Positions 14,440 to 60,093 of a DNA stretch of 64,000 nt are shown one piece after another. The position numbers and the translations under genes are program-made. Location of the stretch: positions 248,001 through 312,000 of IMG/VR virus record IMGVR_UViG_3300033145_003233, one strand, 5' to 3'. The notes beneath the pieces are model-generated. The model had not been told where the DNA came from. It was given only the letters and a program-made list of their open reading frames with translations, and did not search any database. Numbering within the stretch: the first letter of the stretch is position 1; each line of letters opens with the position of its first letter.

Positions 14440-15194
14440 TTTTGCTCCCTATTAAATTGTTTAAGTGGACCTTCCCATATAGGCATGCTTTCGCCCCTAT
14501 CCCAAATTTCTACCAACCCATCTTCCTGCAATTCTTCCAATGTGATTTCTCTACTTTCTCTTTTGGAAACCTCTACAAGAATTTTCTTATCATAGAAGGG
14601 CATACCATTATCGCTATATTTCACCCCTCCTGAAAAAAGACTTAATCTTTTTACACAAGCAGAATTAAGAAATAAACACTTATCAGTGGTTGTTAAAAAT
14701 ATACTACTATTGTGTTTCTTATAACATTGCAAATTATTAACCTTGAAAAGAGCAACATCATTACTTACAAAATTCTTTATCTCTATTGTTGTATTATAAT
14801 TATTTAACATTACTTTAAAATCAGGATGGTTGGGAGCTTTAAGATATGCCCATCCAAGAGGTTTATCATCAAATGTCTGAATTTCTACCTTATTACCTTT
14901 TCTCTCCAATAGGTCTTTAAATTCTGTCATCAACCTAAGCTCTTCTCTCCCTGTGCGGCGCTGTTTAAGTTGAAACTCTGCATCATCTCTATAATCATTT
15001 CTACTATGTCTTACTCCCTGCCCTCCAGAACATGGAACTCCATATAGTTCAGCATTTTTTCTTATTTTTGCATTCTTCTCACAAAATAAAGTACGAGTTA
15101 TTTTATTCTCTTCTAACTCATCTAAATAATCATTAAGCTTAGCTTCTAACAAATCTCTTATTCCATTTGTTGTTAGGGTTTTCTCTTCTATCAT
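14436..15194 (-). CDS. Putative PD-(D/E)XK nuclease
   Basis: HPDFKVML...IEIK; translationally coupled to the methyltransferase. Confidence 0.5.
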   Translation of the reverse strand: MIEEKTLTTNGIRDLLEAKLNDYLDELEENKITRTLFCEKNAKIRKNAELYGVPCSGGQGVRHSRNDYRDDAEFQLKQRRTGREELRLMTEFKDLLERKGNKVEIQTFDDKPLGWAYLKAPNHPDFKVMLNNYNTTIEIKNFVSNDVALFKVNNLQCYKKHNSSIFLTTTDKCLFLNSACVKRLSLFSGGVKYSDNGMPFYDKKILVEVSKRESREITLEELQEDGLVEIWDRGESMPIWEGPLKQFNREQK

Positions 15195-16396
15195 TTTAAA
15201 ATTTCCTCTATCGTCTTAACTTCTATCCCATAAAACATGGTAGGATCTGTTGCAGATTCTCCTCTCCTACTTTTCGTGGTATGGGCCTTCTTCTTACCCT
15301 TCCTGGATTTAGCGAAAGTAAGTCGTTTTCTGGCTTCTTTCAGATACTCCTTATTCGTGTCAATACCTACATAATTATGATCATGTTTTATAGCTACCTC
15401 TCCCGTAGTTCCTGTTCCATTAAAAGGATCTAATATCAAACATTTTTTAATTTTATTTATATCACATTTGCAAGCTTTCTCAAAATCTTCCGGGACTAAC
15501 TCCAGACGATAGCCCTTCTTATTATTAGCTGGTATCTTAACTTTACTAAACTTTCTTTCCCATGGCTTGCCACAATTAGCACAACAACCAGCGTTAGAAG
15601 CAGAAGCTTTAATACAAGGTTCAATTAGAGCCGGAGGATAAGTGGCATAATGTTTTCCCTTGTAGCTAGCAACAGAAGTTCTCCACACCGACCTCTTATT
15701 CCTTTTACCATAATGCTCAAATATTCTATCTTGATCTTGCCTGAATGTCCCATGCTGTTCATTTGCCCCAAACCCCTGGATACCATCAGGTTGATCTTTA
15801 GTATCTTCTAAAACACCATAATAATCATAAAAATATTTAGGAGACTTACTAAATAAAAATAGATATTCGTGTCCACGAGTCGGCCTATCTTTAGCTCCAT
15901 CAGGCATGGGATTTGTTTTTTCCCATATAATATCACAACGCAAATACCACCCATCTTTTTGGAGAGCAAATGCAACCATCCAAGGAATGCCGAATAATTC
16001 TTTCTTCTTTATATAAGAATGCTTAAGGGCCTTTTTGTCCGCAGAACCTCTCGTTCTTCCTTTTCTATCCCACCCATTTGTAGCCCTAGTAAATCCAGAA
16101 TCATTGTTATAACTATCTCCCATATTAAGCCAGAAAGTTCCGTCTTTCCTCAGAACCCTTTTAACTTCTCTTAAAATTTCTACTAAATTTTCTACATATA
16201 ATTCAGGAGTGGATTCCTGCCCTAGTTGATCATCTGCAAAATAATCTCTTAGTTGCCAGTATGGAGGACTAGTCACAACAGTTTGAAATGTATTATCTGG
16301 AAATTGCTTCAAAACATCCCTAGAATTTCCTTCTAACAAAAGAAATTTTTTCGTAATACTTTCCAAAGACATTGTTTGTACATCTATACCTGACAT
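15191..16396 (-). CDS. N4-cytosine/N6-adenine DNA methyltransferase (beta class)
   Basis: TSPPY, HYATYP, DPFNGTGTT motifs; CxxC insertion. Confidence 0.9.
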   Translation of the reverse strand: MSGIDVQTMSLESITKKFLLLEGNSRDVLKQFPDNTFQTVVTSPPYWQLRDYFADDQLGQESTPELYVENLVEILREVKRVLRKDGTFWLNMGDSYNNDSGFTRATNGWDRKGRTRGSADKKALKHSYIKKKELFGIPWMVAFALQKDGWYLRCDIIWEKTNPMPDGAKDRPTRGHEYLFLFSKSPKYFYDYYGVLEDTKDQPDGIQGFGANEQHGTFRQDQDRIFEHYGKRNKRSVWRTSVASYKGKHYATYPPALIEPCIKASASNAGCCANCGKPWERKFSKVKIPANNKKGYRLELVPEDFEKACKCDINKIKKCLILDPFNGTGTTGEVAIKHDHNYVGIDTNKEYLKEARKRLTFAKSRKGKKKAHTTKSRRGESATDPTMFYGIEVKTIEEILK

Positions 16397-19936: not shown

Positions 19937-20022
19937 ATTAACAACTCCTTACTAAAATTAAACTAAATTTCTAAAATACTCGATTAAATATACAGTAATC
20001 TCTTTCACTTTTAAAGTAAAAA

Positions 20023-26444: not shown

Positions 26445-27311
26445 TTATCCCAACCCCAATATTTCAGCTTTTTCTTTCCATTCTCTATTCTCTAATTTCC
26501 CCACTTTTTCAATTGTCTTTAAAGGCCCACCAGGAAAAAGAATTCTCCTTAATGCCAATACCTCATATCTTGTAAGCAACATACCTCCTCGATAAGGGCT
26601 ATAATCTTCCCACGCATCAGTAGCCCAAGGAACAATAGGCTTAATTAAATCTAAGATCGCATCAGCATATACTTGCACTTCTTGTTGAGCATGACTATCA
26701 CATCTCAAATCTAAAAAGTGAAGTAAATTTTTAAGGTCTATCTTCCAGTACCACTCTGTATAAATGTTTAGGGGAAGAGTCATCCTGGCCTGTTCTCTAA
26801 CTAAGTCCCTTTCAAGAAAATCTTTATACAACTCATAAGCACCCAGGGAGGTTCCATCCAACATATCGATAATATTATCTGCTTCCTTCCCTTCAATTCT
26901 GCCCTCAGACCCTTGCTTATTGATAGCAGATTGTTTCCTGATGTTATCTGTTGCTGGAATATAAAATTCATCTGGCATTTCAGAGTACCTACCGCTTAAC
27001 TCATTTATAGAAGCAGTTCTATGACGCACAATCTGCCTTGCCACGAAGATAGGTAATTTCATGTGAAATTTGAATGTCACCATTTCAAAAGGAGAAGTAT
27101 GATTATGTCTTAATAGATATCTAATAAGAATTTTATCATCAGTGATGGTCTTAGTTCCTCTCTGATAACTACATCTAGCAGCCTCTGCTATAGCATGATC
27201 AGCAGTATCTTCCCCATCACGTATCTGCCTTGGCATACAGTCCACTAGCTTAACATAACCCTTATCAAGACACCTAATATCTGTTACCCTACCACTCATA
27301 ATATCCAGCAT
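26445..27311 (-). CDS. thyX: Flavin-dependent thymidylate synthase
   Basis: HTSPFE, RHRTASINELSGRY, HAQQEV. Confidence 0.95.
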   Translation of the reverse strand: MLDIMSGRVTDIRCLDKGYVKLVDCMPRQIRDGEDTADHAIAEAARCSYQRGTKTITDDKILIRYLLRHNHTSPFEMVTFKFHMKLPIFVARQIVRHRTASINELSGRYSEMPDEFYIPATDNIRKQSAINKQGSEGRIEGKEADNIIDMLDGTSLGAYELYKDFLERDLVREQARMTLPLNIYTEWYWKIDLKNLLHFLDLRCDSHAQQEVQVYADAILDLIKPIVPWATDAWEDYSPYRGGMLLTRYEVLALRRILFPGGPLKTIEKVGKLENREWKEKAEILGLG

Positions 27312-27449: not shown

Positions 27450-27923
27450 ATGAATATAAAGAGATTTACGGTACTTTCTATAGAAGATAATAAACCCGAT
27501 TTTGTTCTTTTAGAAAAAGCTTTGAACAAGATTGAGGGTCTTTCTCTTGATATTATTAATATCCCCAGCGGAGAAAAATCACTAGATTTTATATACAAAA
27601 AAGGGGAATACACAGAAGCCACTACTCCTGATTTAATTATTTTAGATATTAATTTACCCCTTTTAGATGGTCAAGAAATATTAAAAATCTTAAAAGAAGA
27701 TAAAAAGTATAGAATAATACCTGTCATCATGTTTAGCACTTCTGACAACGAAAAAGATATAAAAAAATCCTATGGCCTATATGCCAATTCTTACATAACT
27801 AAAACATTTGATATTAATGAATTATTCAGAAAAATAGCCGACATGGGAGAATACTGGTTAAAAACCAGTGAAATCCCAAATCTGAATAATATTTGTATTG
27901 TACAAAAAAACAATAAAAATTAA
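27450..27923 (+). CDS. Single-domain response regulator (Rcp1-like)
   Basis: IEDN, PDLIILDINLP, IPVIMFSTS, ANSYITK. Confidence 0.92.
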   Translation: MNIKRFTVLSIEDNKPDFVLLEKALNKIEGLSLDIINIPSGEKSLDFIYKKGEYTEATTPDLIILDINLPLLDGQEILKILKEDKKYRIIPVIMFSTSDNEKDIKKSYGLYANSYITKTFDINELFRKIADMGEYWLKTSEIPNLNNICIVQKNNKN

Positions 27924-27933
27924 GGAGAAAAAA

Positions 27934-28350
27934 ATGAAGATATTAGTAATAGATGATAGCAGAGAAGATAGGGATCTCATAATCACTCATATAAAAAAAT
28001 CTCAAAGAAGAGAAAAAATCACCACTGACGAAAGCAACTGCTTAGAAGATGCTCTTAAAAAAATTAAATTAAATAATTATGACGTTATTATTTTAGATTT
28101 GATTCTCCCAGAAAGCGATGGCATAGAAACTGTTAAAAATATTGTAAGACATCTTAAAGAAACAAATAAAAATATACCCATAGTTATCCTAACAGGAGTG
28201 GAAGACTACAAGGTAGGAAGAGAAGCAAGACTTTTAGGAATAAAAGATTATCTTATCAAAGACGAAATTCAAGAAAAAGATCTAACAAGAGCATTGAGTT
28301 TTGCTATTCGAGGAAATCATACCAAAAAAAGATTTCTATCATCTGCATAA
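27934..28350 (+). CDS. Single-domain response regulator
   Basis: ILVIDDS, DVIILDLILPESDG, IVILTG, DYLIK; SD AAGGAG. Confidence 0.9.
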   Translation: MKILVIDDSREDRDLIITHIKKSQRREKITTDESNCLEDALKKIKLNNYDVIILDLILPESDGIETVKNIVRHLKETNKNIPIVILTGVEDYKVGREARLLGIKDYLIKDEIQEKDLTRALSFAIRGNHTKKRFLSSA

Positions 28351-28351
28351 A

Positions 28352-28382
28352 TATAGGGCCATTAATGTAATGGCCCTATATC
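28352..28382. terminator. Bidirectional terminator between convergent genes
   Basis: ATATAGGGCCATTA-ATG-TAATGGCCCTATAT inverted repeat. Confidence 0.75.
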
Positions 28383-28383
28383 T

Positions 28384-29544
28384 TTAACTACCTACTTTTA
28401 AATCTTCCATAAATCCCTCTTTTTTCTCTTCCCTCTTCCCAGCTTTTAAGATTTTTTTCAAAGTTGCTTGATCACAATAATTTATGTAAATCATCCCCGC
28501 AGGTTCTTTGTCCCAGTGACCTATCTTCTTAGGATCATCATAAATATCTTGTTTAATTAATGCTCCTGCTCCTATCTCTAACTGTTTAACAGGAGTGATC
28601 TTCCTAACATTTGATGCCGCTTGAGGAGCTACATTACCTTTCTTCATTTTGAACTTAGCACTAGTGTTACTACTACTAGAAACTGACGAGGAAGGAGAAG
28701 ATGAACATCCGGAACTAGACACACCTTTCCCATATGCACCACCCACAGATTGCCCACATGCACCACCCACATAACCTATAAAAGGAGGATGACTCCCAAG
28801 GCTTTTTAAATTGCTGCTCATATCCATATCATCCACTGATAAACAATCTAAAGTACCTTCAAACGTATTGTTTGAAATAAGATCGTTATATGCTCCCCTT
28901 GTTGGAGCAGGCTTTGGTTGAGGCTTCTTTTCTTTACTCAGATAAAAAGCCACTCCTATAGCAAAAACTCTTTCTTTTCCTATTAATTGAGCAGCTATCC
29001 CCCTCATTTCTTCACTGGTAAAAATATATTGTCTTATTTTTCCGTCAGGAGCACGGAAGCCATCAAGCCACAACCCTCCGTAAGGAGTCCCAGTATTACA
29101 AATGTAATTTTGTCCTGGCCACTTAAAACCACATTTTTCACAGAATCTATCCTGTTTAAAATTAACCTTATGAACAGGACATTTCTTTTTATATTTTTCT
29201 AAGCGAAGAGGCTTCTTGCCAACCATCTTTTGTCCCGTAATCGGATTAACTCCCTGAATTGAGATGACGATTGCAACATCATGAGTATGACGAGTACACT
29301 GGTTAAAATCAAGCCACATTCCATGATCTTCTTCAACACCCACGAAATAGCTACTAGCCATATCTGAGCCATGCATCCAGGTAGAAGGGCACCCAGGATA
29401 TTCATCCACAGGATAAACAGTTTGTACAGCGTATGGAGGTAAATTTTGAGCTACTTCTTCTCCATCAGAAAACCAACTATCTACCTTACGAGGCATATTA
29501 AAAGAACATACTAAATCTTTTTTAACTGACATATTATTTGACAT
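28384..29544 (-). CDS. Conserved uncharacterised protein with Zn-ribbon insertion
   Basis: LPP...MWLDF...QNY...WLDGF...IRQY...GAGALIKQDIYDD pattern recalled from an uncharacterised bacterial/fungal family; CPVH...CEKC. Confidence 0.55.
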   Translation of the reverse strand: MSNNMSVKKDLVCSFNMPRKVDSWFSDGEEVAQNLPPYAVQTVYPVDEYPGCPSTWMHGSDMASSYFVGVEEDHGMWLDFNQCTRHTHDVAIVISIQGVNPITGQKMVGKKPLRLEKYKKKCPVHKVNFKQDRFCEKCGFKWPGQNYICNTGTPYGGLWLDGFRAPDGKIRQYIFTSEEMRGIAAQLIGKERVFAIGVAFYLSKEKKPQPKPAPTRGAYNDLISNNTFEGTLDCLSVDDMDMSSNLKSLGSHPPFIGYVGGACGQSVGGAYGKGVSSSGCSSSPSSSVSSSSNTSAKFKMKKGNVAPQAASNVRKITPVKQLEIGAGALIKQDIYDDPKKIGHWDKEPAGMIYINYCDQATLKKILKAGKREEKKEGFMEDLKVGS

Positions 29545-29566
29545 ATTATTTCTCCTTTAATCGAAA

Positions 29567-29594
29567 ATAGGTGGACAGACCAGCTGCCCACCTA
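29567..29594 (-). terminator. Rho-independent terminator-like hairpin
   Basis: TAGGTGGGCAG-CTGGT-CTGTCCACCTA-TTTT. Confidence 0.65.
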
Positions 29595-29609
29595 CCGATT
29601 CAACGGTTA

Positions 29610-30488
29610 TTAACACTCTATGTTGTCGCCAAAAGGCTGATTACCGCGATCAGATTTTCCGCTGCCTCCGAGTTTCATCTTAAGCAATGGAAGACTTCCA
29701 GTTTTTGATAACTCATCAAACTCCAAGGAAGCCTGAGGATATCTGCTTCTTAGGGTGTCTAAGGTACAACTTTTAGTCATCACCCTATCAAGAATATCAT
29801 TTGCATCAGCAGCAGCTTCAACACAAATCTCTTCAGTTCTCTCAACAGCTATCCACAGCAACTGACGAATATCCATAGAAACACCATCCCATGAACGACC
29901 TGTCTGATCGCATGTCTCGCCGGAACGTAATGACCTTCCTGGATAAATAGGATTCTCATTTGCATAAGAATCTGGACGGTCCCCTACTCTATACGTAGCA
30001 GTAGGCCTTCCCCCTACAAAAGCACGATCAACTTCTGGCAAATTGTTTTCCAAGTCCTCTAATAATTTAGCTGACTCTTCCACAACCACCTTGCCATCGT
30101 TATCAAAGATAATAAAACATTTCCCTTCGGAACGCTCTTTTAATCTTTTACCGACAGCATTCTTCACATCTTTTGGATTGTAACGTTCCAAAAGCCCTCT
30201 TGCATCCATGCCATTAGCCTTTCTTTCAGAGACATAACCGGATTTCTTTGTACTTCCGTTGTCTGCCTGCCGAAACATATGGGCCAAGCTCCGTGCCATT
30301 ATCTTAGGAATACCGCAACTCTGCAAGTCTTCCCAGCTAACAGCTTTTAACGTTTGTTCTGATGTCCCGCCTAACTTACGCAGACTTTGCAAAAAATTAT
30401 CAAAGTCTATCTTATCGGGGGCATCAACAGTGGAATTGTGCTCATCTATAACCTGACGAGCGGATTGGATCTTTGAATCAAAACTCAT
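29610..30488 (-). CDS. Hypothetical protein with SAM/HhH-like N-terminus
   Basis: LKAVSWEDLQSCGIPKIMARSL; strong SD AAGGAG. Confidence 0.6.
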   Translation of the reverse strand: MSFDSKIQSARQVIDEHNSTVDAPDKIDFDNFLQSLRKLGGTSEQTLKAVSWEDLQSCGIPKIMARSLAHMFRQADNGSTKKSGYVSERKANGMDARGLLERYNPKDVKNAVGKRLKERSEGKCFIIFDNDGKVVVEESAKLLEDLENNLPEVDRAFVGGRPTATYRVGDRPDSYANENPIYPGRSLRSGETCDQTGRSWDGVSMDIRQLLWIAVERTEEICVEAAADANDILDRVMTKSCTLDTLRSRYPQASLEFDELSKTGSLPLLKMKLGGSGKSDRGNQPFGDNIEC

Positions 30489-30500
30489 TTGAATCTCCTT

Positions 30501-30552
30501 TACTCTAACTCTAAACTACTAACTAACTAACTAACTCTAACTCTAAACTCTA
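30501..30552 (-). repeat. UAG-repeat tract (10 TAG triplets) in a 5' leader directly upstream of the SD
   Basis: Minus strand TAGAGTTTAGAGTTAGAGTTAGTTAGTTAGTTAGTAGTTTAGAGTTAGAGTAAAGGAG. Confidence 0.85.
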
Positions 30553-30582
30553 CGTAGCAGAACAACTACCACTATATTAACT

Positions 30583-30639
30583 ATTCGACAAGAATAGCTC
30601 AACTCCTTTAATTATACCAGATAATCTTTCACTTTTCAA
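30583..30639 (-). promoter_or_regulatory. Tandem class 1 (30611-30639) and class 2 (30583-30607) promoters
   Basis: TTGAAA-AGTGAAAGATTATCTGG-TATAAT, then AGGA-N17-GAAT. Confidence 0.65.
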
Positions 30640-30855
30640 GAAAAAATAAAAATTATGCCCAATCTAAATTTTCTGGGTCTGTTGGAATCCCCTTCCCTAT
30701 ACTAAACCCATAATCTACTAGTATAAACCGATCATTCCATGAGTGAATAAGCCCACGTTGTCTTAATCCTCCATCATCAAAAATGACATCCTTCATTTTA
30801 TCCTTTTTTGTAAGTTCTTTAATGTCAATCATATAGACATTATAGCATATTATTT

Positions 30856-31632
30856 TCACTTTTCAAGAGAATTTATAAAAGGATGATCTCTCCAAAAGAT
30901 ATGATTCTTATTTATCTTATCCTTAAAATTCTCCATCATGTCCCTATATTTAAAAGAACGAGGTTTTTTATATTTATGACTTGAAGAGAAATTCCATGAA
31001 GTCAAAAAAGACACGTCCCTTTTTTCTAATAAAGAAGATATGCATATCTTATCAAGATACCTATATATATTAGTCCTTTGATATTCGGCCTTTCGTTTAT
31101 TTTTATATCGTATTTTATCACAATATAATATATGATTATCAAAAAACAATATTGTAATATTTAAACAAACATAAGCAGTCCACCACCAAGAAATATCATC
31201 AAAACCTAGAAATGTGGGAAAACATAAATCTATTATATCTCTATGAAAAGCAAGCACAGCCGTATCATATGTTGTAAATTTTTGATGGAAACGATAAGCA
31301 AGAGTTCCAACGGCAGGCTCATATTCTATTAAGAAATCATCAAACACTTTCCATGGGTTTTTGCCCCTGTCTTCTGAATACTTCTTTTCCCGTATGAATA
31401 ATTCCAGGTCATCATCTAAAACGACATAATATAAATATTTTTTAGGAACGGCCTCTATCAACTTATTCCTACCCTCCCAAACAGTACTATCAGGAAAGAA
31501 TATATTATTCTTATGTTCTACAGGTCTCTTCCAAGAATGTATATAAACATCTCTCCCCATATCCTCTAATATTTTGACATAATCCGGAATGTAGTCGGGT
31601 GTTTGAACTAAATATGCAATGTTATTATCCAT
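30856..31632 (-). CDS. Glycosyltransferase-like protein, paralog 1
   Basis: GRNKL..VPKKYLYYVVLDDD; N-terminus near-identical to its neighbour. Confidence 0.5.
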   Translation of the reverse strand: MDNNIAYLVQTPDYIPDYVKILEDMGRDVYIHSWKRPVEHKNNIFFPDSTVWEGRNKLIEAVPKKYLYYVVLDDDLELFIREKKYSEDRGKNPWKVFDDFLIEYEPAVGTLAYRFHQKFTTYDTAVLAFHRDIIDLCFPTFLGFDDISWWWTAYVCLNITILFFDNHILYCDKIRYKNKRKAEYQRTNIYRYLDKICISSLLEKRDVSFLTSWNFSSSHKYKKPRSFKYRDMMENFKDKINKNHIFWRDHPFINSLEK

Positions 31633-32404
31633 TAATAAAAGGATGGTCCTTCCAAAAAATATGATTTTTATCTACTCTATTTTTAAAATTCTCAGCCATC
31701 TTCGCATAGTCTCCTAAACGAAATTTCTCTGGCGGGAGAAATAAAGTTGGATATTCCTGTTCATGATAAAAAACACGTTTGAAATTATCTTTGTCCTCTT
31801 TATACAAAAAAGATTTCTTCCATACATTATTAAACAACCTATTAGAATAAGCCCTGCAATATTCTCTACCTAATTTATTCGCGAATTCTAATCCATCACA
31901 ATAATACACATACAAGTAAAAAGCATAAATAAGAGTTATTATATGCATAGATCCAGTCCACCACCATGAGAGATTATCAAAGCCGGTATATACAGGGAAA
32001 CCCACTTTCATAACATCCTTATGATAAGCCAAAATTGATCCTTCACACCTAACTCTTTTTCGAGTAACCTCATAAGCTATAGTCCCTACAGCAGGTTTAT
32101 ATTCAATTAAAAAATGCTCGAATACTTCCCACGGATTTTTATTTTTAAAACATCTACCTTCCTTAATATATAATTCAACATCATCTTCCACAGAAATATA
32201 ATATAGATATTTCTTAGGTACTATTTCTGCCAATTTATTTTTTCCCTCCCAGCATGTGCTCTCTGGAAAGAATATATTATTTTTATGTTCTAATGGCTTC
32301 TTAAAAGAAAGTAGATACACATCTCTACCCATATCCTCTAATATTTTGACATAATCGGGAATGTAATCTGGAGTTTGTATAAGATATGCTATATCTTGCT
32401 TCAT
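31625..32404 (-). CDS. Glycosyltransferase-like protein, paralog 2
   Basis: IAYLIQTPDYIPDYVKILEDMGRDVY...VEDD...KNHIFW.DHPFIN shared with paralog 1. Confidence 0.5.
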   Translation of the reverse strand: MKQDIAYLIQTPDYIPDYVKILEDMGRDVYLLSFKKPLEHKNNIFFPESTCWEGKNKLAEIVPKKYLYYISVEDDVELYIKEGRCFKNKNPWEVFEHFLIEYKPAVGTIAYEVTRKRVRCEGSILAYHKDVMKVGFPVYTGFDNLSWWWTGSMHIITLIYAFYLYVYYCDGLEFANKLGREYCRAYSNRLFNNVWKKSFLYKEDKDNFKRVFYHEQEYPTLFLPPEKFRLGDYAKMAENFKNRVDKNHIFWKDHPFING

Positions 32405-33547
32405 CTATTCTTCTTGAAAATCAATCGATTTAGAAATAGTAAAATATACATAGGACCCCTTATCTTTTTCTGAATCTATCCATATCTTACCCCCATGGGC
32501 TTCTACTATCCTTTTACAAAGTGCTAACCCTATCCCTGTACCAGGATATTCTTCCCTAGAATATAATCTTTTAAAGATACCGAATACCCTGTCCATATAT
32601 TTAGAATCTATCCCTAAGCCATTATCTTTAACATAAAACAGCCAGCACGAATCTTCATCACAACAACCTATCCTGATAAAAGGAGATTCCTTGGACCTAA
32701 ATTTTAATGCATTACTAATTAAATTATGTAATAATTGTTTAATTCTAAAACGAATACCAAGGATGTGTGGCAAATCACCCTCCACAATAATTTTTGCACT
32801 GGACTCCCGAATCTTCACCTCAAAATCCATCATTGTTTCTTCTAACAAGTCATTTAAATTGATGGTCTCAAATGGCTTATCCCTTCTCCCTACTCGTGAA
32901 AAATCAAGTAGCTCTTCTATAAGTGTCTTCATTCTTATAGTGGCATCAATAATATAAAGAAAATACTTTTCAGCATCTTGATCTTCATCATATAAAGACT
33001 CACCTTTTTTCCTTTTCTCTGTAAGCAACTGACAATAACTAGAGACCACTCTTAATGGCTCCTGTAAATCATGAGAAGCGACATACGCAAATTCTTCAAG
33101 TTCCTGATTGCTTTGTCGCAAGGCATCTGCCGTTTCTTCCAATGTTCTACCATCCCTTATCCTTTCAGTAGCGTCCTGTTGAAAACCTACAAACCCTATT
33201 GTTTCGTCCTTATCGTTTTTTAACGGAGAAACAGTGAGGTCCATTAAAAAAATATCTCCATTTTTACGTTTATTTTTTAATAACCCCTTCCACGTTCCCC
33301 CATTATTAATTACCCTGGAGATACCATGTTGTATCTCATCTTTATTTACCTCCGCATTTAATATGCCAGGATGTTCCCCTAGTAATTCTTTTCTATCAAA
33401 ACCATATAAATTTTCCGATGCCTTATTGATGTATACTATACTTTGGTCTAAATTTGTAACAATAACAGATTCATGCATCTGCTCCATGACTGCCTTAAAA
33501 AACCATATTTCCTTATAAAAATTTTTATTTATAATATTCTTGTTCAT
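32405..33547 (-). CDS. PAS-domain sensor histidine kinase (Cph1-like HisKA-HATPase)
   Basis: PAS/PAC; FAYVASHDLQEPLR; NLISNALKF; DNGLG; GTGIGLA. Confidence 0.95.
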   Translation of the reverse strand: MNKNIINKNFYKEIWFFKAVMEQMHESVIVTNLDQSIVYINKASENLYGFDRKELLGEHPGILNAEVNKDEIQHGISRVINNGGTWKGLLKNKRKNGDIFLMDLTVSPLKNDKDETIGFVGFQQDATERIRDGRTLEETADALRQSNQELEEFAYVASHDLQEPLRVVSSYCQLLTEKRKKGESLYDEDQDAEKYFLYIIDATIRMKTLIEELLDFSRVGRRDKPFETINLNDLLEETMMDFEVKIRESSAKIIVEGDLPHILGIRFRIKQLLHNLISNALKFRSKESPFIRIGCCDEDSCWLFYVKDNGLGIDSKYMDRVFGIFKRLYSREEYPGTGIGLALCKRIVEAHGGKIWIDSEKDKGSYVYFTISKSIDFQEE

Positions 33548-33944: not shown

Positions 33945-35462
33945 TTAATAATTAAAATCTAATTTTTCCTTCATTCCTATGTAAACTGCTTCATAAGCTG
34001 TTAGTTTACCTTCAGAAGTTAATTTAATAAGAACTTTTTCCTTTTCGGAATTAGTTAAACCTGCTAATCTAGGTTCAATTATATTATAAGTTTTTTCTAA
34101 TTTAGTCATATCTTCATCACCAAATACAAATTTTGCTCCACCATGAACTGATTCCTCGCTTGAGCTGCTTGAGCTACTTAGGCTTGAACTACTTTGGCTA
34201 GAACTTGAACTACTTAAGCTAGAGCTACTTTGGCTTGAACTACTTGAGCTAGAGCTACTTTGGCTAGAGCTACTTGAGCTAGAGCTACTTGAGCTAGAGC
34301 TACTTGAGCTAGAGCTACTTGAGCTGGAACTGCTTGAGCTAGTAGCAACCGAAGCACACTCATCAGTGTTAGTATCACAGACAGTAGTATGAAAATAATT
34401 TGGACCAAATACTGTAGCACACCATGCTGTCCCAGATGTTGCTTCACAATTAGCGTCTATACTAATAGCAATCGGCAATTGATCTTCCCTTACCACAAAA
34501 CACGAATGTTTAGCTGCATTAGTAGACCTTCCCCAATCAGTCGCCAGATGTTCTCCCTCAGCTACATACTGCCCCCATCCTTCCCCATATAACTTTAAAT
34601 AATTAGGATGAGAAGGAGAAACACCATCGCAAGGATTATTAACACAATCAGGTGGATTACTCTGGCTAATTAATCTTCTACTTGTCCCCACACAACCACT
34701 ATCCCATATTATTTCTCCGGTACAAGTTTGTCCATCATAATTAGCGTATATAATTATTCGATCTCTTACTGTATAGGTAGTATATTCCATAAGAAAATTA
34801 GCCCATCTATTCGGAGATGTTCCCTGCCAGTCACTAGGGCATTCTAATCCCAGACAACACGATTCACAACTATTATATATAGGAGTAGGAATAGAATCTA
34901 AAATCAATTCCCCTCCCACAATGGGAGTTTTATTGTCATAGGCATCTTGATCTACATACCAGCACAAATCATCATATTTAAAATAAGATGGCAATACAAC
35001 CGCTGCCGCCTCATTTACGTATAAAGTATAACCTGGTGGAGTCTGTGGAGGATTACATCCAGTATCGCATAATTGAGCTTCCACCTTTTCATCCCCTATT
35101 TCTTCGCATAATAAACTGGACTCAGCCTGTATGTCACTTTCAAAAAAAGTCTGATCTATCCTAACCTTTGCCTTAAAATAAACTATACCATCACAACCAG
35201 ATACATCTATGGTAGCAGAATATGGCTCGTTCAAAGAAGAAGAATCTAGAACATTATCTAAAGAAGAACTATTATTACAACTCCATAATAATTTATTATA
35301 TGTAAGAGTATCAAAAGATCTATTATAACTATCTTCTATAACCCATTCTACACGCAGATTGTTACCAGAACAATTCCAACCAGTGATAATAACCTGTATA
35401 TCTTCTGGACAAACAGGTTGCTCACATTGATCAAAACCATTTACATATCTTTGAAAAGCCAT
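33945..35462 (-). CDS. Cys-rich paralog with poly-Ser linker (probable virion fibre/appendage)
   Basis: MAFQRY.NGFDQC family; about 22 Cys; ~60-residue Ser tract. Confidence 0.6.
   Translation of the reverse strand: MAFQRYVNGFDQCEQPVCPEDIQVIITGWNCSGNNLRVEWVIEDSYNRSFDTLTYNKLLWSCNNSSSLDNVLDSSSLNEPYSATIDVSGCDGIVYFKAKVRIDQTFFESDIQAESSLLCEEIGDEKVEAQLCDTGCNPPQTPPGYTLYVNEAAAVVLPSYFKYDDLCWYVDQDAYDNKTPIVGGELILDSIPTPIYNSCESCCLGLECPSDWQGTSPNRWANFLMEYTTYTVRDRIIIYANYDGQTCTGEIIWDSGCVGTSRRLISQSNPPDCVNNPCDGVSPSHPNYLKLYGEGWGQYVAEGEHLATDWGRSTNAAKHSCFVVREDQLPIAISIDANCEATSGTAWCATVFGPNYFHTTVCDTNTDECASVATSSSSSSSSSSSSSSSSSSSSSSSSSSQSSSSSSSSSQSSSSLSSSSSSQSSSSLSSSSSSSEESVHGGAKFVFGDEDMTKLEKTYNIIEPRLAGLTNSEKEKVLIKLTSEGKLTAYEAVYIGMKEKLDFNY
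34158..34340 (-). repeat. Poly-serine coding repeat (15-bp unit GAGCTAGAGCTACTT on plus strand)
   Basis: Three perfect tandem units at 34276-34320 plus degenerate copies. Confidence 0.9.
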
Positions 35463-41117: not shown

Positions 41118-43643
41118 TTATACCTCCGCCACAATCAAAGATAAAACAGCAGTATCTTCTATCATGTCAAAAACTTCTTTCCTAAGTTTTTCTTTATTAT
41201 CTGGATTCCATATAATCCTAACTTGAGTACCCTTGATATCATCTACTTTTCCATATTCTTGAGGATTAGCCATCCCCTTCCTTCTGTCTCTTACCCTCAT
41301 ACCTACTTGATATTGAGGAAGAGCTTCTTTCGGACCTTTCACAATTTCTGTTTTATCTTGATATAACTTATCAATAGCCTCCGGTAAAACTTGTGACAAT
41401 TTTACTTGCTTAAACCAATTCCCTGACATTAGCGGCTCCCTATATTTATTAATTATTTCTGGGGCCATCGCATGGACGGCCTGAGTAGCTTGAACTTTAG
41501 AATTCTCAAAAACATTTTGTTTCTCATTCCCGTCTGGCATAGTAGCAAAACTCATATCAATCTTGCCAGTATCTTGAAGCTCTTTAAGTCTATTTAATAC
41601 TTCTTTTATATAACCAGTAGAAGGACTTAAAACAGGAGTAAGAGTAGAAAATATATTTATTATATCACTTCCATTTATCACTGTTCCTCGAAATATCCCA
41701 GTTGGACTTTCTACAAAATTACTAAAATTTTCAAAGAATTTAGTATGTTTTTCTTCATTATAATTATCTGGTTGAGATGCCATATCATCAGCTTGAACAT
41801 GATACAAAACGTACTTCCATAAGTCTTTATGTTCTTCATCTTTACCATGCATTCTTGTATCTCTTAAAAATCTACCCCTACCTTTAGGCCCCCACTTATC
41901 AGCAGAATGAGGACGCATATGTAATCTTATAACCTGATTAACTATATCTCTCTCATCTCTACCAACACCAATAGATTTAAGGATCTGATTTGCCATCTTA
42001 GTAGATGCTCTCTCGTGATCTATATATTGCATCTGTTCCACATTCTTAGGATGAGGCTTCTGCACACCACCTTTCATCTTTCCAAAATCATGAAATAAAG
42101 CAGCAAGATTCATAAGGCCCCTCATATGATCACTTTCTCCATTATCTTGCATTATCTTATTCATATTTTTTACAACTTCTAAAGTATGATCTAATAAATT
42201 ATATTTATGATAAGGAGTTTGTTGATTCATCATTATACCTTCAGGATGCAAATCATCCATTTCAGGAACTTTAAATGCTGACTTATATAAACCAGTACTA
42301 AATAATAATTTAAGAGAATCAACTGGATTTCCCATTAACATCTTCATTAATTCTGGTCCAGCTCTTTCAGAAGCTACCTTCTTACTATATGATTCATGAA
42401 TAGAAGGATCTCCCATTGCCTTAACAATAGAATCATCAATTACGCTATTAGGAAAACGACTATGAAAACGCAAAACTCTCAAAAGCCTAAGAGGATCTTC
42501 ATGAAAAGTTTTATATGATTCATCTGGAGTTCTTAAAACTATTTGACCATCTCCCTCTATCCCCAAATCTTTTTTCCCGCCAACAAAATCATCTACCTCA
42601 CCTGTATCTATATTATAATAAAGAGCATTGATAGTTAAATCTCTTCTTCTAACATCTTCCTTGGGATTATTTGTAGTAGTAATTTGTGGTTGACGACTAT
42701 TGGGATCAGGATAATGCTCTGTTCTCATTGGAACAAATTCTATTTTTTGGCCGAATAAATCAACTGCTCCAACCATCAACTTATCATCAGGAGCTTTCTC
42801 TAATGGATCAGCAGATTTCTCCAAACTTACCTTATATGCTTTAGAAACATCAATTATATTATGCCTAACGGCTGCTTCAGCAACTAATTGAGCGAAATCA
42901 TAACCAGGCATATCAATAGCTATATCTATGTCATCACTAGGTATCCCCAATAACTTATCTCTCACCCATCCACCAGCTACTCTCATTTGAATATTAAGCC
43001 CGTGTCCTTTTTTAACTGTCTTTAAAAACTCAAATATGTTTTTCTCCTTAGGAGTAAGAGATAATTCAGAATGACCCCCGATTACTCTCTGCCCCTTTTT
43101 AAAAACCTTCTTCCCAGTAGTAGATAATCTAGAAGTAGGAAAAGAGAGACCAGGAACACTATTAGAAACCAAACACTCCACACCGATATCAAATTCTTCT
43201 ACTATATTTTTAACCGAGTCAAAAGATCCCATAGCAGCAGGCTCATTAACAATAATTCTTATAAGAGAATCAGATATATCTAACTCTTCTGCAAAGTTTA
43301 GTTGCAATCCCCCAAAGCGACTCTTTTCAGCCCCTGTTTTTTGAGAATCTAGTACTAAAAATATAGAATACTCTTTAAAATATTTATCAGCAAACCTCTG
43401 AGAAAACAGAGGAATAGGACTAAAAAAAGATATCTTATTCTTAATTAAAAAACCTCTTAAGTCTATAATATCACAAGGAAAAACCATATGTCTTGTAGGC
43501 AAGAAAGCAGCAAGGTCATCAATTAATCTGTCCGAACAATCAGCCACATAGGAAAATAATGACCTAAATCTTTGCAAACAGGATAAAATAACATCCTTAT
43601 CCACGTTTATTGGATCTCCTCTTATTTCTCGAACAACCCCCAC
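41118..43643 (-). CDS. cca: CCA tRNA nucleotidyltransferase with HD domain and N-/C-terminal extensions
   Basis: GGWVRD, DDIDIA, RRDLTINA, DPLRLLR, ERAGPEL, LFHDFGK. Confidence 0.9.
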   Translation of the reverse strand: MGVVREIRGDPINVDKDVILSCLQRFRSLFSYVADCSDRLIDDLAAFLPTRHMVFPCDIIDLRGFLIKNKISFFSPIPLFSQRFADKYFKEYSIFLVLDSQKTGAEKSRFGGLQLNFAEELDISDSLIRIIVNEPAAMGSFDSVKNIVEEFDIGVECLVSNSVPGLSFPTSRLSTTGKKVFKKGQRVIGGHSELSLTPKEKNIFEFLKTVKKGHGLNIQMRVAGGWVRDKLLGIPSDDIDIAIDMPGYDFAQLVAEAAVRHNIIDVSKAYKVSLEKSADPLEKAPDDKLMVGAVDLFGQKIEFVPMRTEHYPDPNSRQPQITTTNNPKEDVRRRDLTINALYYNIDTGEVDDFVGGKKDLGIEGDGQIVLRTPDESYKTFHEDPLRLLRVLRFHSRFPNSVIDDSIVKAMGDPSIHESYSKKVASERAGPELMKMLMGNPVDSLKLLFSTGLYKSAFKVPEMDDLHPEGIMMNQQTPYHKYNLLDHTLEVVKNMNKIMQDNGESDHMRGLMNLAALFHDFGKMKGGVQKPHPKNVEQMQYIDHERASTKMANQILKSIGVGRDERDIVNQVIRLHMRPHSADKWGPKGRGRFLRDTRMHGKDEEHKDLWKYVLYHVQADDMASQPDNYNEEKHTKFFENFSNFVESPTGIFRGTVINGSDIINIFSTLTPVLSPSTGYIKEVLNRLKELQDTGKIDMSFATMPDGNEKQNVFENSKVQATQAVHAMAPEIINKYREPLMSGNWFKQVKLSQVLPEAIDKLYQDKTEIVKGPKEALPQYQVGMRVRDRRKGMANPQEYGKVDDIKGTQVRIIWNPDNKEKLRKEVFDMIEDTAVLSLIVAEV

Positions 43644-49962: not shown

Positions 49963-51078
49963 CTACCTCTTAGACTTCTCCTGACTAGCTATGAGAAGAG
50001 ATTCAACTGCAAATTTATTAAAAAGCTGCACCGGATTAAGGCTATATTCCACTCCAAATGCCACATTGCTTAAAAGATTCATTAATTTTAGAATCATATC
50101 TCCAGAAGAAATGCTGGAATTCTGATGAAGATATCTCTTAATTTCTTCCTGAGTAAAATCAAATGGATCAAGATCTTGCTTGCATGTTCTTATTAGTAAT
50201 AAATTATTAAGATGCTCGTACACTCCATCAAGAATAAATTTCACCTCTTTGCCATCTCGAAATATCTGATTAATAGTTTGAAAACATCCTATACTATTTT
50301 TGCTAATAATATGATCAACCATCTCAAAATATAAAGATTCATCTATAACCCCCAATGCTTCCCTGGCCTTGGTAGCTGTAATTTCTTCCTCTCCTGCATA
50401 ATTCATAAGAGTTTGCAAATTCTGAAGACAATCTCTAACAGACCCCTTTGCATGTTTGGCTATTATCTGCAATGCTTTTTCCTCACAATTCAATCCTTCT
50501 TTCTGAACAATCTTTTTAAGATGCTCAAATATCTCAGGCCACGGTACTTTATTAAAAGTCCATAAAATACAGCGACTATGAATCGTTGGTTTAAAAGATT
50601 GAGGCTCTGTAGTACAAAGAATAAATCTCACAAATTTAGGAGGTTCTTCAATCATCTTTAAAGAAGCTTCAGCAGCAGCCCCCGTTAAAGAATGTGCCTC
50701 ATCAATAATAACGTATCTTGTTCTGCATTCAACTGGACAATGATACAATGATTTGTGTAAATCTCTAATATCATCTACCTTTCCTCCGCTTCCAGCATCT
50801 ATTTCCCTCACTTCGTAAGACTTCCCTGTAAAAATTTCTTCACAATTTGAACATTTTCCACAAGGATCTTTTTTACCTTCTTTGCAATTCTCCATAGCTG
50901 CTATAATTCTAGCTGTAGTCGTCTTGCCACAACCATAATTACCCGCTAAGATATAAGCATGATGAAGAGTATTAGATTTAAAAGCATTTGTAAAAGCTTT
51001 TACAACAACTGGTTGTCCAATAACATCTGATAATTTCTTCGGTCTATATTTTAAACATAATGGTTCTTCGATATTCAT
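49963..51078 (-). CDS. dnaX: DNA polymerase III gamma/tau subunit
   Basis: KYRP, HAYILAG..GCGKTT, C..PCGKCSNC, IIDEAH, EEPP, TIHSRC, GSVRD. Confidence 0.95.
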   Translation of the reverse strand: MNIEEPLCLKYRPKKLSDVIGQPVVVKAFTNAFKSNTLHHAYILAGNYGCGKTTTARIIAAMENCKEGKKDPCGKCSNCEEIFTGKSYEVREIDAGSGGKVDDIRDLHKSLYHCPVECRTRYVIIDEAHSLTGAAAEASLKMIEEPPKFVRFILCTTEPQSFKPTIHSRCILWTFNKVPWPEIFEHLKKIVQKEGLNCEEKALQIIAKHAKGSVRDCLQNLQTLMNYAGEEEITATKAREALGVIDESLYFEMVDHIISKNSIGCFQTINQIFRDGKEVKFILDGVYEHLNNLLLIRTCKQDLDPFDFTQEEIKRYLHQNSSISSGDMILKLMNLLSNVAFGVEYSLNPVQLFNKFAVESLLIASQEKSKR

Positions 51079-58098: not shown

Positions 58099-60093
58099 TT
58101 ATTTTTTCTTCCACTTTTTAAACTTTTTCTTTTTAAATACTATCTCTTCTCCCGTATCTTTGTCATAAAAGCCCCTGCAATCATCTTTTCTCCAGTTTCG
58201 ACAGCCAAGATACTCCCAATTTTTTTTACTTTTCTTTTTAATCAGCGGCTCATCACAGTTAGGGCAAACAAAATTACTTTCTTCTATTTCTATTTTTGGT
58301 TTTTCTTTTGGTTCGCCATCTTTAGAAATATCACATTTATAATCACATTTGATAGTTTTATTGGATCTATTGCTACAACTCAAAAACTCTCCCCATTTAC
58401 TATATTTTTTTAAGAGATTTGCTCCGCACTGAGGACATTTAAAATCAGTTTTACTATTCTCTTCTTTTTTCTCTTTCGATCTTTTAATATCTTCTTTTAA
58501 TCTATCCCAAAATTCTTGTAAAACATCTACCTTACAACAATCTCCCCTAGAGATACAATCAAGCTGGGTTTCTAAATTAGATGTGAATCCAAGGTCAACA
58601 AAGCAAAAATTTGCTCCCACCAAGAAATCGGAAACCCTAATCCCCATCTCTGTAGTATAGATTATATTTTTCTTCTTTTCGATGTAACCTCTTTTAAACA
58701 AAGTAGTTGGAATAGAAGCATATGTACTAGGGCGACCAATACCCCTCTTTTCAAGTTCTTTTGTAAGAGATGATTCACTATATCTTGGAGATGGAGAAGT
58801 GAATTTCTGCTCAGTTTTTACATTTATCAGTTTTAATTCTTCCCCAACGACAAATTCGGGCAAGACAGAAGTAGAAAAAGACCCATAATTCCATACTTTT
58901 TTCCATCCATCAAAAATCACTTTACTTCCATTTGCCCCGAAAATGTACTTCTCACACTCAAATTCTGCCGTTCCAACGAACTGAATTAGATTTGCCATCT
59001 GAGAGGCTACAGTCCGTTTCCAGACGATTTTATATAATTTGGCATTATCACCCCCAGATACGCTTTCTTCGGCTATATCGGTCACTCTGATGGCTTCATG
59101 AGCCTCCTGAGCAGTAGACTTATTGGCAAATACATTCTTCTTACTTGAAAGATATTTATCTCCATATTTAGTTGGAATTAGACATCTCATAGCTTGAACA
59201 AAATCAGGGACAATATATGTCGAATCGCTTCTTATATATGTGATAGATCCCTGCTCATAAAGAGATTGAGCCACCTGTGCTGTCTTCTTAGATCCCCATC
59301 CAAGAATAGAAGAAGCTGACTGATATAATGTCGAAGTAGTAAATGGAGGATAAGCTCTTGTAGATTTTTCTTTTGTCTCATATTTTGAAACTATCCATTT
59401 TTCCTTCTTCAACACATCAACAATGTCATTAGCTTGCTTTTCTGTTTTTATTTCTAATGGCTTAGGAACCTTAATATTAGCTATTACTCTTTCCCCATTG
59501 TTCCTTTCTAATTCTACTTCAATTGGCCAATATTCTTGTGGAACAAAATCCCTTATCTCTTTTTCTCTCTCTGCAAGAATTCTTAATGCCGCGCTTTGAA
59601 CTCTTCCAGCAGATGGACCACCAGTAGCTTGTTTTGTGGGGAAAGATGCCTTATACCCACACAACCTATCAAGTATTCTTCTACACTCATAGCTAGCAAC
59701 CATATCCATATCTAAATCACCAGCATTTTTAATTGCCTCTTGAACAGCACTTTTTGTAATAGAACCAGTCACTGCTCTTTTAATAGTTGTACCTTTAGGA
59801 ATATAACGAGAGATATGCCATGCAATTGCTTCTCCCTCTCTATCAAGATCAGACATAAGATATACTATCTCTGCCTTCTTAGCCTTATCTTTAATCTTTT
59901 TAATAGTATCTTGTTTATCAGAATTGATAGCATAAGTTGGTTTGAAATCATTTTTCAAATCAACGCTTAATTTCTTTTTAGGAAGATCTGCAACATGTCC
60001 CATAGACGCAATTACATCGTAATCTTTACCAAGATATTTCTTAATGTAACCAGTCTTTTTAGGAGACTCAACTATTACTAAGTATTTGGACAT
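58099..60093 (-). CDS. topA: Type IA DNA topoisomerase I
   Basis: IVESP, DLDREGE, SAGRVQS, ITYIRSDS, GIGRPSTY, C-terminal Zn ribbons. Confidence 0.97.
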   Translation of the reverse strand: MSKYLVIVESPKKTGYIKKYLGKDYDVIASMGHVADLPKKKLSVDLKNDFKPTYAINSDKQDTIKKIKDKAKKAEIVYLMSDLDREGEAIAWHISRYIPKGTTIKRAVTGSITKSAVQEAIKNAGDLDMDMVASYECRRILDRLCGYKASFPTKQATGGPSAGRVQSAALRILAEREKEIRDFVPQEYWPIEVELERNNGERVIANIKVPKPLEIKTEKQANDIVDVLKKEKWIVSKYETKEKSTRAYPPFTTSTLYQSASSILGWGSKKTAQVAQSLYEQGSITYIRSDSTYIVPDFVQAMRCLIPTKYGDKYLSSKKNVFANKSTAQEAHEAIRVTDIAEESVSGGDNAKLYKIVWKRTVASQMANLIQFVGTAEFECEKYIFGANGSKVIFDGWKKVWNYGSFSTSVLPEFVVGEELKLINVKTEQKFTSPSPRYSESSLTKELEKRGIGRPSTYASIPTTLFKRGYIEKKKNIIYTTEMGIRVSDFLVGANFCFVDLGFTSNLETQLDCISRGDCCKVDVLQEFWDRLKEDIKRSKEKKEENSKTDFKCPQCGANLLKKYSKWGEFLSCSNRSNKTIKCDYKCDISKDGEPKEKPKIEIEESNFVCPNCDEPLIKKKSKKNWEYLGCRNWRKDDCRGFYDKDTGEEIVFKKKKFKKWKKK

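Follow-up and report, generated by a model that had tools for sequence, protein, structure and literature searches.

A UAG-repeat leader before two genes of huge phages, a candidate RNA operator for an unidentified protein

Triplet-repeat RNA operators read by multi-subunit proteins are known from very few systems, essentially TRAP (MtrB) and HutP in Bacillus. TRAP binds the trp, trpG, trpP and ycbK mRNAs, and its natural targets are 9-11 NAG repeats (N = G ~ U) with nonconserved spacers, mostly of 2-3 nt; it can block ribosome binding, as at trpG and trpP, and (UAGUU)11 is one of its laboratory ligands (PMC1474065; PMC4347634). HutP binds the hut mRNA at two sets of three UAG triplets with 4-nt spacers, ahead of a terminator. 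Two phage systems are also relevant, specifically: 1) the autogenous translational operator of T4 gene 32, in which a structured element at the 5' end (a pseudoknot) is followed by a repetitive tract of UUAAA/UAAA that runs to the ribosome-binding site (RBS), and is bound by the cooperative single-strand-binding product of the gene itself; and, 2) the promoter-plus-stem-loop cassettes (PeSLs) of T4-type phages, which are scattered among many early genes.

Here we describe a run of UAG triplets lying just before the Shine-Dalgarno (SD) sequence of a gene in a huge phage. The window analysed is a 64,000-nt stretch, positions 248,001-312,000 of a 547,943-bp IMG/VR virus record that is rated complete, with a GC content of about 34% and almost all genes on the minus strand. 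An initial annotation of this stretch had reported ten TAG triplets within 48 nt, and this observation is confirmed. The triplets lie on the minus strand (30505-30552), starting at 30552, 30545, 30539, 30533, 30529, 30525, 30521, 30518, 30513 and 30507, with spacers of 4, 3, 3, 1, 1, 1, 0, 2 and 3 nt, and there are only two C in the surrounding 60 nt. The array is followed by AGUA, then by AAGGAG (30495-30500), 4 nt after the last UAG and 6 nt before the ATG (30488-30486) of the ORF 29610-30488 (-), which encodes a 292-aa protein that we call p292. Tandem Repeats Finder reports the array as period 4 and period 7. A count of 10 TAGs per 48 nt is the maximum on either strand of the genome, and thirty first-order Markov simulations of the genome gave maxima of 6-8. 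The other dense clusters, of up to 8 TAGs, lie out of frame in serine-rich coding repeats; one such ORF, of 505 aa (33945-35462, -), contains a 15-nt tandem repeat of about 9 copies (34168-34342) that encodes a serine- and leucine-rich stretch, and similar serine-rich repeat ORFs at both genome ends account for the other TAG-dense stretches. An antisense or sponge partner RNA was sought and rejected, as there is no CUA-rich array on the coding strand and no dense TAG array on the opposite strand.

The array is the last part of a longer leader. Upstream of it lies a sigma-70-like promoter (30611-30639, -; TTGAAA, 17 nt, TG-extended TATAAT), and a second promoter (30839-30866, -) sits 227 bp further upstream, before a small ORF (30653-30859) that separates the two and is not conserved in relatives. 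Both match the consensus at 11 of 12 positions and have a TG-extended -10. The initial annotation had proposed tandem class 1 and class 2 promoters, and this is only partly confirmed, since the two belong to one sequence class, TTGAAAAGTGAAA-N9/10-TGNTATAAT, defined by the extended -35 element TTGAAAAGTGAAA and present in about 13 copies in the genome. The same class precedes the vWA or p292 leaders of 28 relatives. The predicted, but not mapped, 5' end of the transcript falls at 30603-30610 (-), where UAAAGGAG corresponds to an AUUAAAG box that is nearly invariant in related leaders. The predicted 5' UTR of about 116 nt folds into two hairpins followed by the array. Hairpin 1 (30579-30599, -) has an 8-bp stem with the loop UUGUC, and its 3' arm carries the nearly invariant CGA of a YCGAW motif; hairpin 2 (30554-30572, -) has a 7-bp stem that holds one UAG, and an equivalent GUAGUUGGCC-type hairpin is present in many relatives. 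Altogether three more TAGs lie upstream of the array, inside or next to these hairpins. After p292 there is an intrinsic terminator-like hairpin plus U tract (29565-29592, -), with an equivalent in relatives.

A DNA search of the genome found one homologous leader, 73% identical over about 120 nt, at genome position 6.6-6.7 kb. It has the same promoter, a hairpin in the same place with a different stem, five UAGs and AAGGAG, and it precedes a 212-aa protein with a von Willebrand factor A (vWA) domain that carries the DxSxS metal-site signature. A scan of all 895 SD-preceded ORFs of at least 50 codons ranked p292 first (10 TAG, 2 C). The vWA gene (5 TAG, 1 C) was the only other clear repeat-type leader; two ORFs with 6 TAGs had irregular, non-repetitive upstream regions. 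Two further genes show weaker resemblance. The phage SSB gene (PF00436; 19526-19936, -) has a promoter of the same class and a short leader (19937-19990, -) with three UUUAG-type pentamers and one UUUAA before AAGGAG, but this is a weak version of such a leader, and SSB leaders in four relatives are A/U-rich and keep AAUCGAG at the 5' end without a UAG array. An AAA+ ATPase gene (PF00004) outside the window (genome position 418926, -; L006:3-1445) has the same promoter class and a C-free leader with four irregular UAGs, and its homologue in G001 (a 351-kb genome of a relative) has a UAGUAGUAG...UAG leader; as AAA+ and vWA proteins often work together, this may be a weak third target or partner.

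Whether homologous genes in other phages keep similar leaders had been put forward in advance as a way to check the operator reading, and for the close relatives they do. Megablast of the locus against the phage collection and a single-protein locus search in viral contigs found nothing, and tblastn found one distant relative, LR756511, whose leader has hairpins but no array. However, p292 has 105 relatives in the large protein collection, none of them annotated, and alignment-based scans returned 36 viral and 80 metagenomic loci. In the close clade (45-63% protein identity) nearly every p292 gene is preceded by a UAG array directly before the SD, and in most of these phages the vWA gene lies immediately upstream of p292. 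The unit then reads PAS histidine kinase, promoter, AUUAAAG box, hairpin, UAG array, vWA, UAG array, p292, terminator, with vWA and p292 forming one promoter-to-terminator operon. In the phage of this window the pair has been split (vWA at genome position 6.5 kb), and each gene has kept the promoter, hairpin and array. A scan of genome contigs gave one hit, a 546-kb contig (L147, CALFYV010000090.1, 546,147 bp) that is assigned to a Bacteriovoracaceae MAG and encodes a p292 homologue (34% identity); it is probably a huge-phage genome binned with a bacterium and gave no clue to the host.

We compared 58 non-redundant leaders of relatives (38 p292, 20 vWA). In these, TAG is the most frequent trinucleotide, at 7.1 per 58 nt, the longest runs hold 5-13 triplets with a mode of 8, and C makes up 4.7% of bases. 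The spacer is 2 nt in 245 of 341 cases (72%; UU 170, AA 40), 4 nt in 42 (mostly AGUU), 3 nt in 23 and 0-1 nt in 20, and the units are UAGUU, UAGAA and UAGAGUU, and several relatives carry essentially (UAGUU)9-10. Periods of 5, 6 and 7 each dominate in different lineages. Of 29 exactly duplicated repeat units, all nine that occur in three or more leaders contain UAG, namely AGUUU, AGAGUUU, AGUU, AAUAG, AGAGU, AGAGUU, a 10-mer, AGUUUU and AGUAU. The arrays also change in copy number, as two contigs whose p292 coding sequence is 100% identical differ by one 7-nt unit, AGAGUUU, and a pair at 91% identity has 8 versus 12 UAGs. Thus the arrays turn over fast by slippage, yet the UAG triplet, the orientation and the position next to the SD persist across proteins that have diverged to about 50% identity. 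It should be noted that shared descent of the repeat units could explain part of this constancy, and that one sub-clade (loci L012 and L075-L079) has only 4-5 irregular UAGs together with extra hairpins, which shows that the array is not indispensable in every lineage. The initial annotation had also offered a slippage-tuned expression switch, which is half right, because copy number does differ between otherwise identical phages, but the array is not in a promoter spacer or in the SD-ATG spacer and so cannot act as a simple on/off switch. Read-level variation in repeat number, which had been suggested beforehand as a test, was not examined, nor was expression.

In three genomes of 300-550 kb the arrays occur only at these two genes. 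In G001 and in G002 (a second relative, 298 kb) a period-5 UAG pattern hits only the two leaders, and the full scan of SD leaders again ranks vWA and p292 first, with 8 and 5 TAGs in G001 and 11 and 10 in G002. A different short UAG-containing repeat leader is present in G002, where four copies of an AAUAGAAU-type unit lie directly before the SD of a 68-codon ORF (C1, about 145880-145940). Across IMG/VR, the exact (TAGTT)4TAG string occurs in 69 stretches, and apart from this clade (L159 in G002, L198 in G001) these are microsatellites with no adjacent SD, with the exception of a pair of related viral contigs (L154 and L181, of 105 kb and 177 kb), not otherwise linked to this clade, in which the array is followed by AGGAG and a 26-codon ORF.

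Other features of the leader RNA are also conserved. Twenty-eight promoter-bearing leaders share AUUAAAG and a hairpin whose 3' arm holds the nearly invariant CGA, with stems that differ between lineages but form in the same place. RNAalifold on a plain MAFFT alignment of the 5' leader returned no structure, because the 5' arms are out of register, and we therefore used single-sequence folds and z-scores; the first 46 nt fold better than shuffles (mean z -1.7, 21 of 28 below -1, p about 1e-8). In a distant clade (32-43% identity) the gene order is p292 then vWA, and vWA has an ordinary leader. There, p292 has a purine-rich leader with a few UAGs, preceded by a GCAGC-loop-GCUGC hairpin that is paired in all 19 distinct sequences, with compensatory changes at three of five pairs, which 0 of 500 shuffles reached. 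A conserved leader RNA thus accompanies p292 throughout the family, and the periodic UAG array is the elaboration found in the close clade. A search of Rfam with the leader gave only chance-level hits (E 0.9-5.5, below gathering scores).

The module as a whole is conserved and unannotated. Searches of Pfam, PHROGs, NCBIfam and PADLOC gave nothing for p292 or its neighbours, apart from the kinase, vWA and receiver domains. The PAS histidine kinase gene (32405-33547, -) lies, in relatives, directly upstream of the promoter-hairpin-array-vWA-array-p292 unit. Downstream of p292, after the terminator, o386 (28384-29544, -) is a gene of unknown function and no known family, conserved in 47 loci but without a UAG leader; the ESM Atlas places its product structurally near bacterial proteins, some of them fused to vWA domains (TM about 0.53). 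Two receiver-only response-regulator genes (27450-28350, +; 27450-27923 and 27898-28350) are convergent with the module, of which the second is conserved in relatives and the first found no match in the flanks examined. Together with the kinase they make up a two-component system within a conserved island (27450-33547) and flank vWA/p292/o386 in relatives, and no output domain is evident. Other recognisable genes of the window are an N6/N4 DNA methylase (15191-16396), ThyX (26445-27311), a CCA-adding/poly(A) polymerase with an HD domain (41118-43643), a DnaX-like clamp-loader subunit (49963-51078) and a type IA topoisomerase (58099-60093). Many small ORFs (genome 146-152 kb, 508415 and 521186; window about 22300) end with a shared C-terminal motif of the type NR(F/S)E(I/L)LDL, whose codons run straight into the SD of the next gene, suggesting a large paralogous family of tandem small genes.

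The initial annotation had given p292 a SAM/HhH-like N-terminus, and this is weakly supported. The protein models well (pLDDT 85), but in Foldseek and VIA searches only residues 1-78 find structural neighbours, HhH and SAM domains at Z 6-7, while the separately modelled body (pLDDT 92) has a best Z of 4.1 and no detectable known fold. A profile search against PDB sequences was empty and the ESM Atlas gave no lead. Five arginines, a tryptophan and a CDQTGRSW block are invariant or nearly so, which is compatible with nucleic-acid binding but does not show it. A prediction of a p292-vWA complex returned no verdict, which counts neither for nor against binding. Family searches of the phage genome for other candidate readers, TRAP, HutP, Hfq, RRM_1, RegA and S1, were all negative.

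We hypothesise that the UAG run is the main part of a cis-acting RNA operator. In this view the mRNA begins with the AUUAAAG box and hairpin and then presents 5-13 UAG triplets on variable spacers up to the SD of p292, and also of vWA; an oligomeric or cooperatively binding protein would read the triplets and, when bound within the 30S footprint, would set how much of the two proteins is translated. The initial annotation had inferred such an operator for a ring-shaped or cooperative RNA-binding protein, possibly p292 itself, and its interpretation is partly supported, since UAG is kept while spacers, period and copy number change and the arrays are confined to one gene pair, although no binding protein was found. 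As the operator occurs only at these two genes, stays with p292 in every gene arrangement, and p292 has a conserved leader RNA even in distant clades, the most economical binder is a product of the module itself (autogenous control by p292, or by p292 with vWA), with a host TRAP-like protein as the alternative. What our analysis shows is the anatomy of the leader, its conservation, its restriction to the module and its turnover by slippage, whereas binding by a protein, the identity of that protein and the direction of regulation are inferred, in the absence of any binding or expression data. We hold this explanation tentatively, as the best of those considered but not as one more likely than not. 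A more speculative reading, which we regard as doubtful, is that p292, with its 190-residue body, is a new kind of RNA-binding translational autoregulator, which nucleates on the leader hairpin and spreads over, or wraps, the triplet array to control its own synthesis and that of its vWA partner; the array plus p292 would then be a new protein-RNA recognition system, analogous to TRAP but unrelated to it.

The main rival is a leader that needs no protein. Here the array would be a C-free spacer with no start codons and many stop codons, serving as a ribosome landing or standby zone that escapes loading of Rho (which prefers C-rich RNA), and UAG would be a frozen feature of an ancestral unit propagated by replication slippage. 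The low C content, the absence of AUG, GUG and UUG from the arrays, the slippage seen directly and the ease with which (TAGTT)n arises in 69 unrelated viral contigs, mostly with no SD nearby, may be consistent with this, and A/U-rich enhancer leaders are established. However, the arrays are not predicted to be more open than 185 control leaders of the same genome (0.44 versus 0.47 unpaired), which argues against selection for mere lack of structure and weakens the simplest form of this reading. Moreover, G is kept once per unit, almost always as UAG, in nine different recurrent units, only two genes in 300-550 kb use such a leader although many genes must be highly expressed, and a conserved hairpin accompanies the arrays. 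We consider this rival less likely than the operator, but as slippage can propagate an ancestral UAG-containing unit, C-free leaders escape Rho and no binder is in hand, it keeps substantial weight.

Two other readings fit less well. The initial annotation had mentioned an iteron, and direct repeats of 5-7 bp together with the resemblance of the p292 N-terminus to HhH DNA-binding modules could indicate repeats acting as DNA, either as iterons or as a roadblock operator for a double-strand DNA-binding protein. However, the arrays are always on the sense strand and always next to an SD, they often lie between two cistrons with no promoter, 50-100 bp from any promoter, and their variable period breaks helical phasing. 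No origin-like features were seen, but origin activity was not itself assessed; position and orientation argue against iterons without deciding the matter, and we regard a DNA-level role as very unlikely. A link to stop-codon reassignment or suppression, as a sink or sensor for amber-decoding factors, could be suggested by stop codons in all three frames and by the recoding of TAG in some huge phages. This was rejected, since all 29 tRNAs of the genome are standard with no suppressor, ORFs are long, dense and contiguous under table 11, and the array is untranslated, so TAG is an ordinary stop codon here.

If a binder exists, it is either a new RNA-binding protein family or a case of a phage using a host metabolic sensor, and either would be a new example of translational control in huge phages and a compact, tunable RNA-protein pair for engineering. 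The leader is also a candidate new cis-regulatory RNA family. The design of the known triplet-repeat operators is kept here across more than fifty lineages of uncultivated huge phages, with some arrays matching the laboratory ligand (UAGUU)n, and yet with no known reader protein present.

TRAP sites are the closest working analogue. In common with them, the arrays consist of multiple UAG triplets with nonconserved spacers, at the translation initiation region, in an operator so long that only very few genes carry it; the ten triplets of this window fall within the 9-11 of TRAP targets, and the 5-13 of the relatives are similar. For spacing the comparison is divided, as 268 of 341 spacers in relatives are 2-3 nt but only 4 of 9 in this window are, five of the nine being 0-1 nt and too short for TRAP geometry, which leaves this criterion undecided. 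In contrast to TRAP sites, the triplet is almost only UAG, periods of 4, 6 and 7 also occur, which argues against one fixed ring geometry, the arrays end 3-8 nt before GGAG rather than overlapping it, and the genes are unrelated to tryptophan. No TRAP protein (PF02081) was found at E <= 1 in the phage genome or in four relatives (G001-G004). It is possible that the host's own TRAP binds the arrays and ties translation of the two genes to the host's tryptophan level, given the (UAGUU)n arrays of many relatives with 7-11 triplets and 2-nt spacers, which match TRAP's optimal ligand, and given that the strong AAGGAG SDs, TG-extended -10 promoters and 34% GC fit a Bacillota-like host. However, the host has not been identified, so its TRAP was not searched for, and TRAP has a narrow distribution while the samples are marine, lake and subsurface sediments; with the spacing and periods given above, we consider this unlikely.

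HutP sites share UAG triplets with 4-nt spacers, as in the UAGAGUU units of several relatives and in part of this window's array. However, there is no HutP homologue (PF09021) in the phage genome, an SD and not a terminator or antiterminator follows the array, most spacers are 2 nt, the copy number is much higher than two sets of three, and the genes are not histidine genes, and this is thus not a TRAP or HutP site in the strict sense. The gene 32 operator of T4 is matched in its anatomy, with a conserved structured 5' element followed by a repetitive tract that reaches the RBS, confined to the regulated gene or genes in a phage setting. The repeat is UAG-based rather than UUAAA/UAAA, the 5' element is a hairpin rather than a pseudoknot, and p292 is not a recognisable single-strand binding protein, although binding of p292 to its own leader was not measured here. 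Finally, like the PeSLs of T4-type phages, a promoter, hairpin and leader cassette is present at two distant places in one genome (278.6 kb and 6.7 kb), but here the cassette carries a UAG array and is tied to two specific genes.
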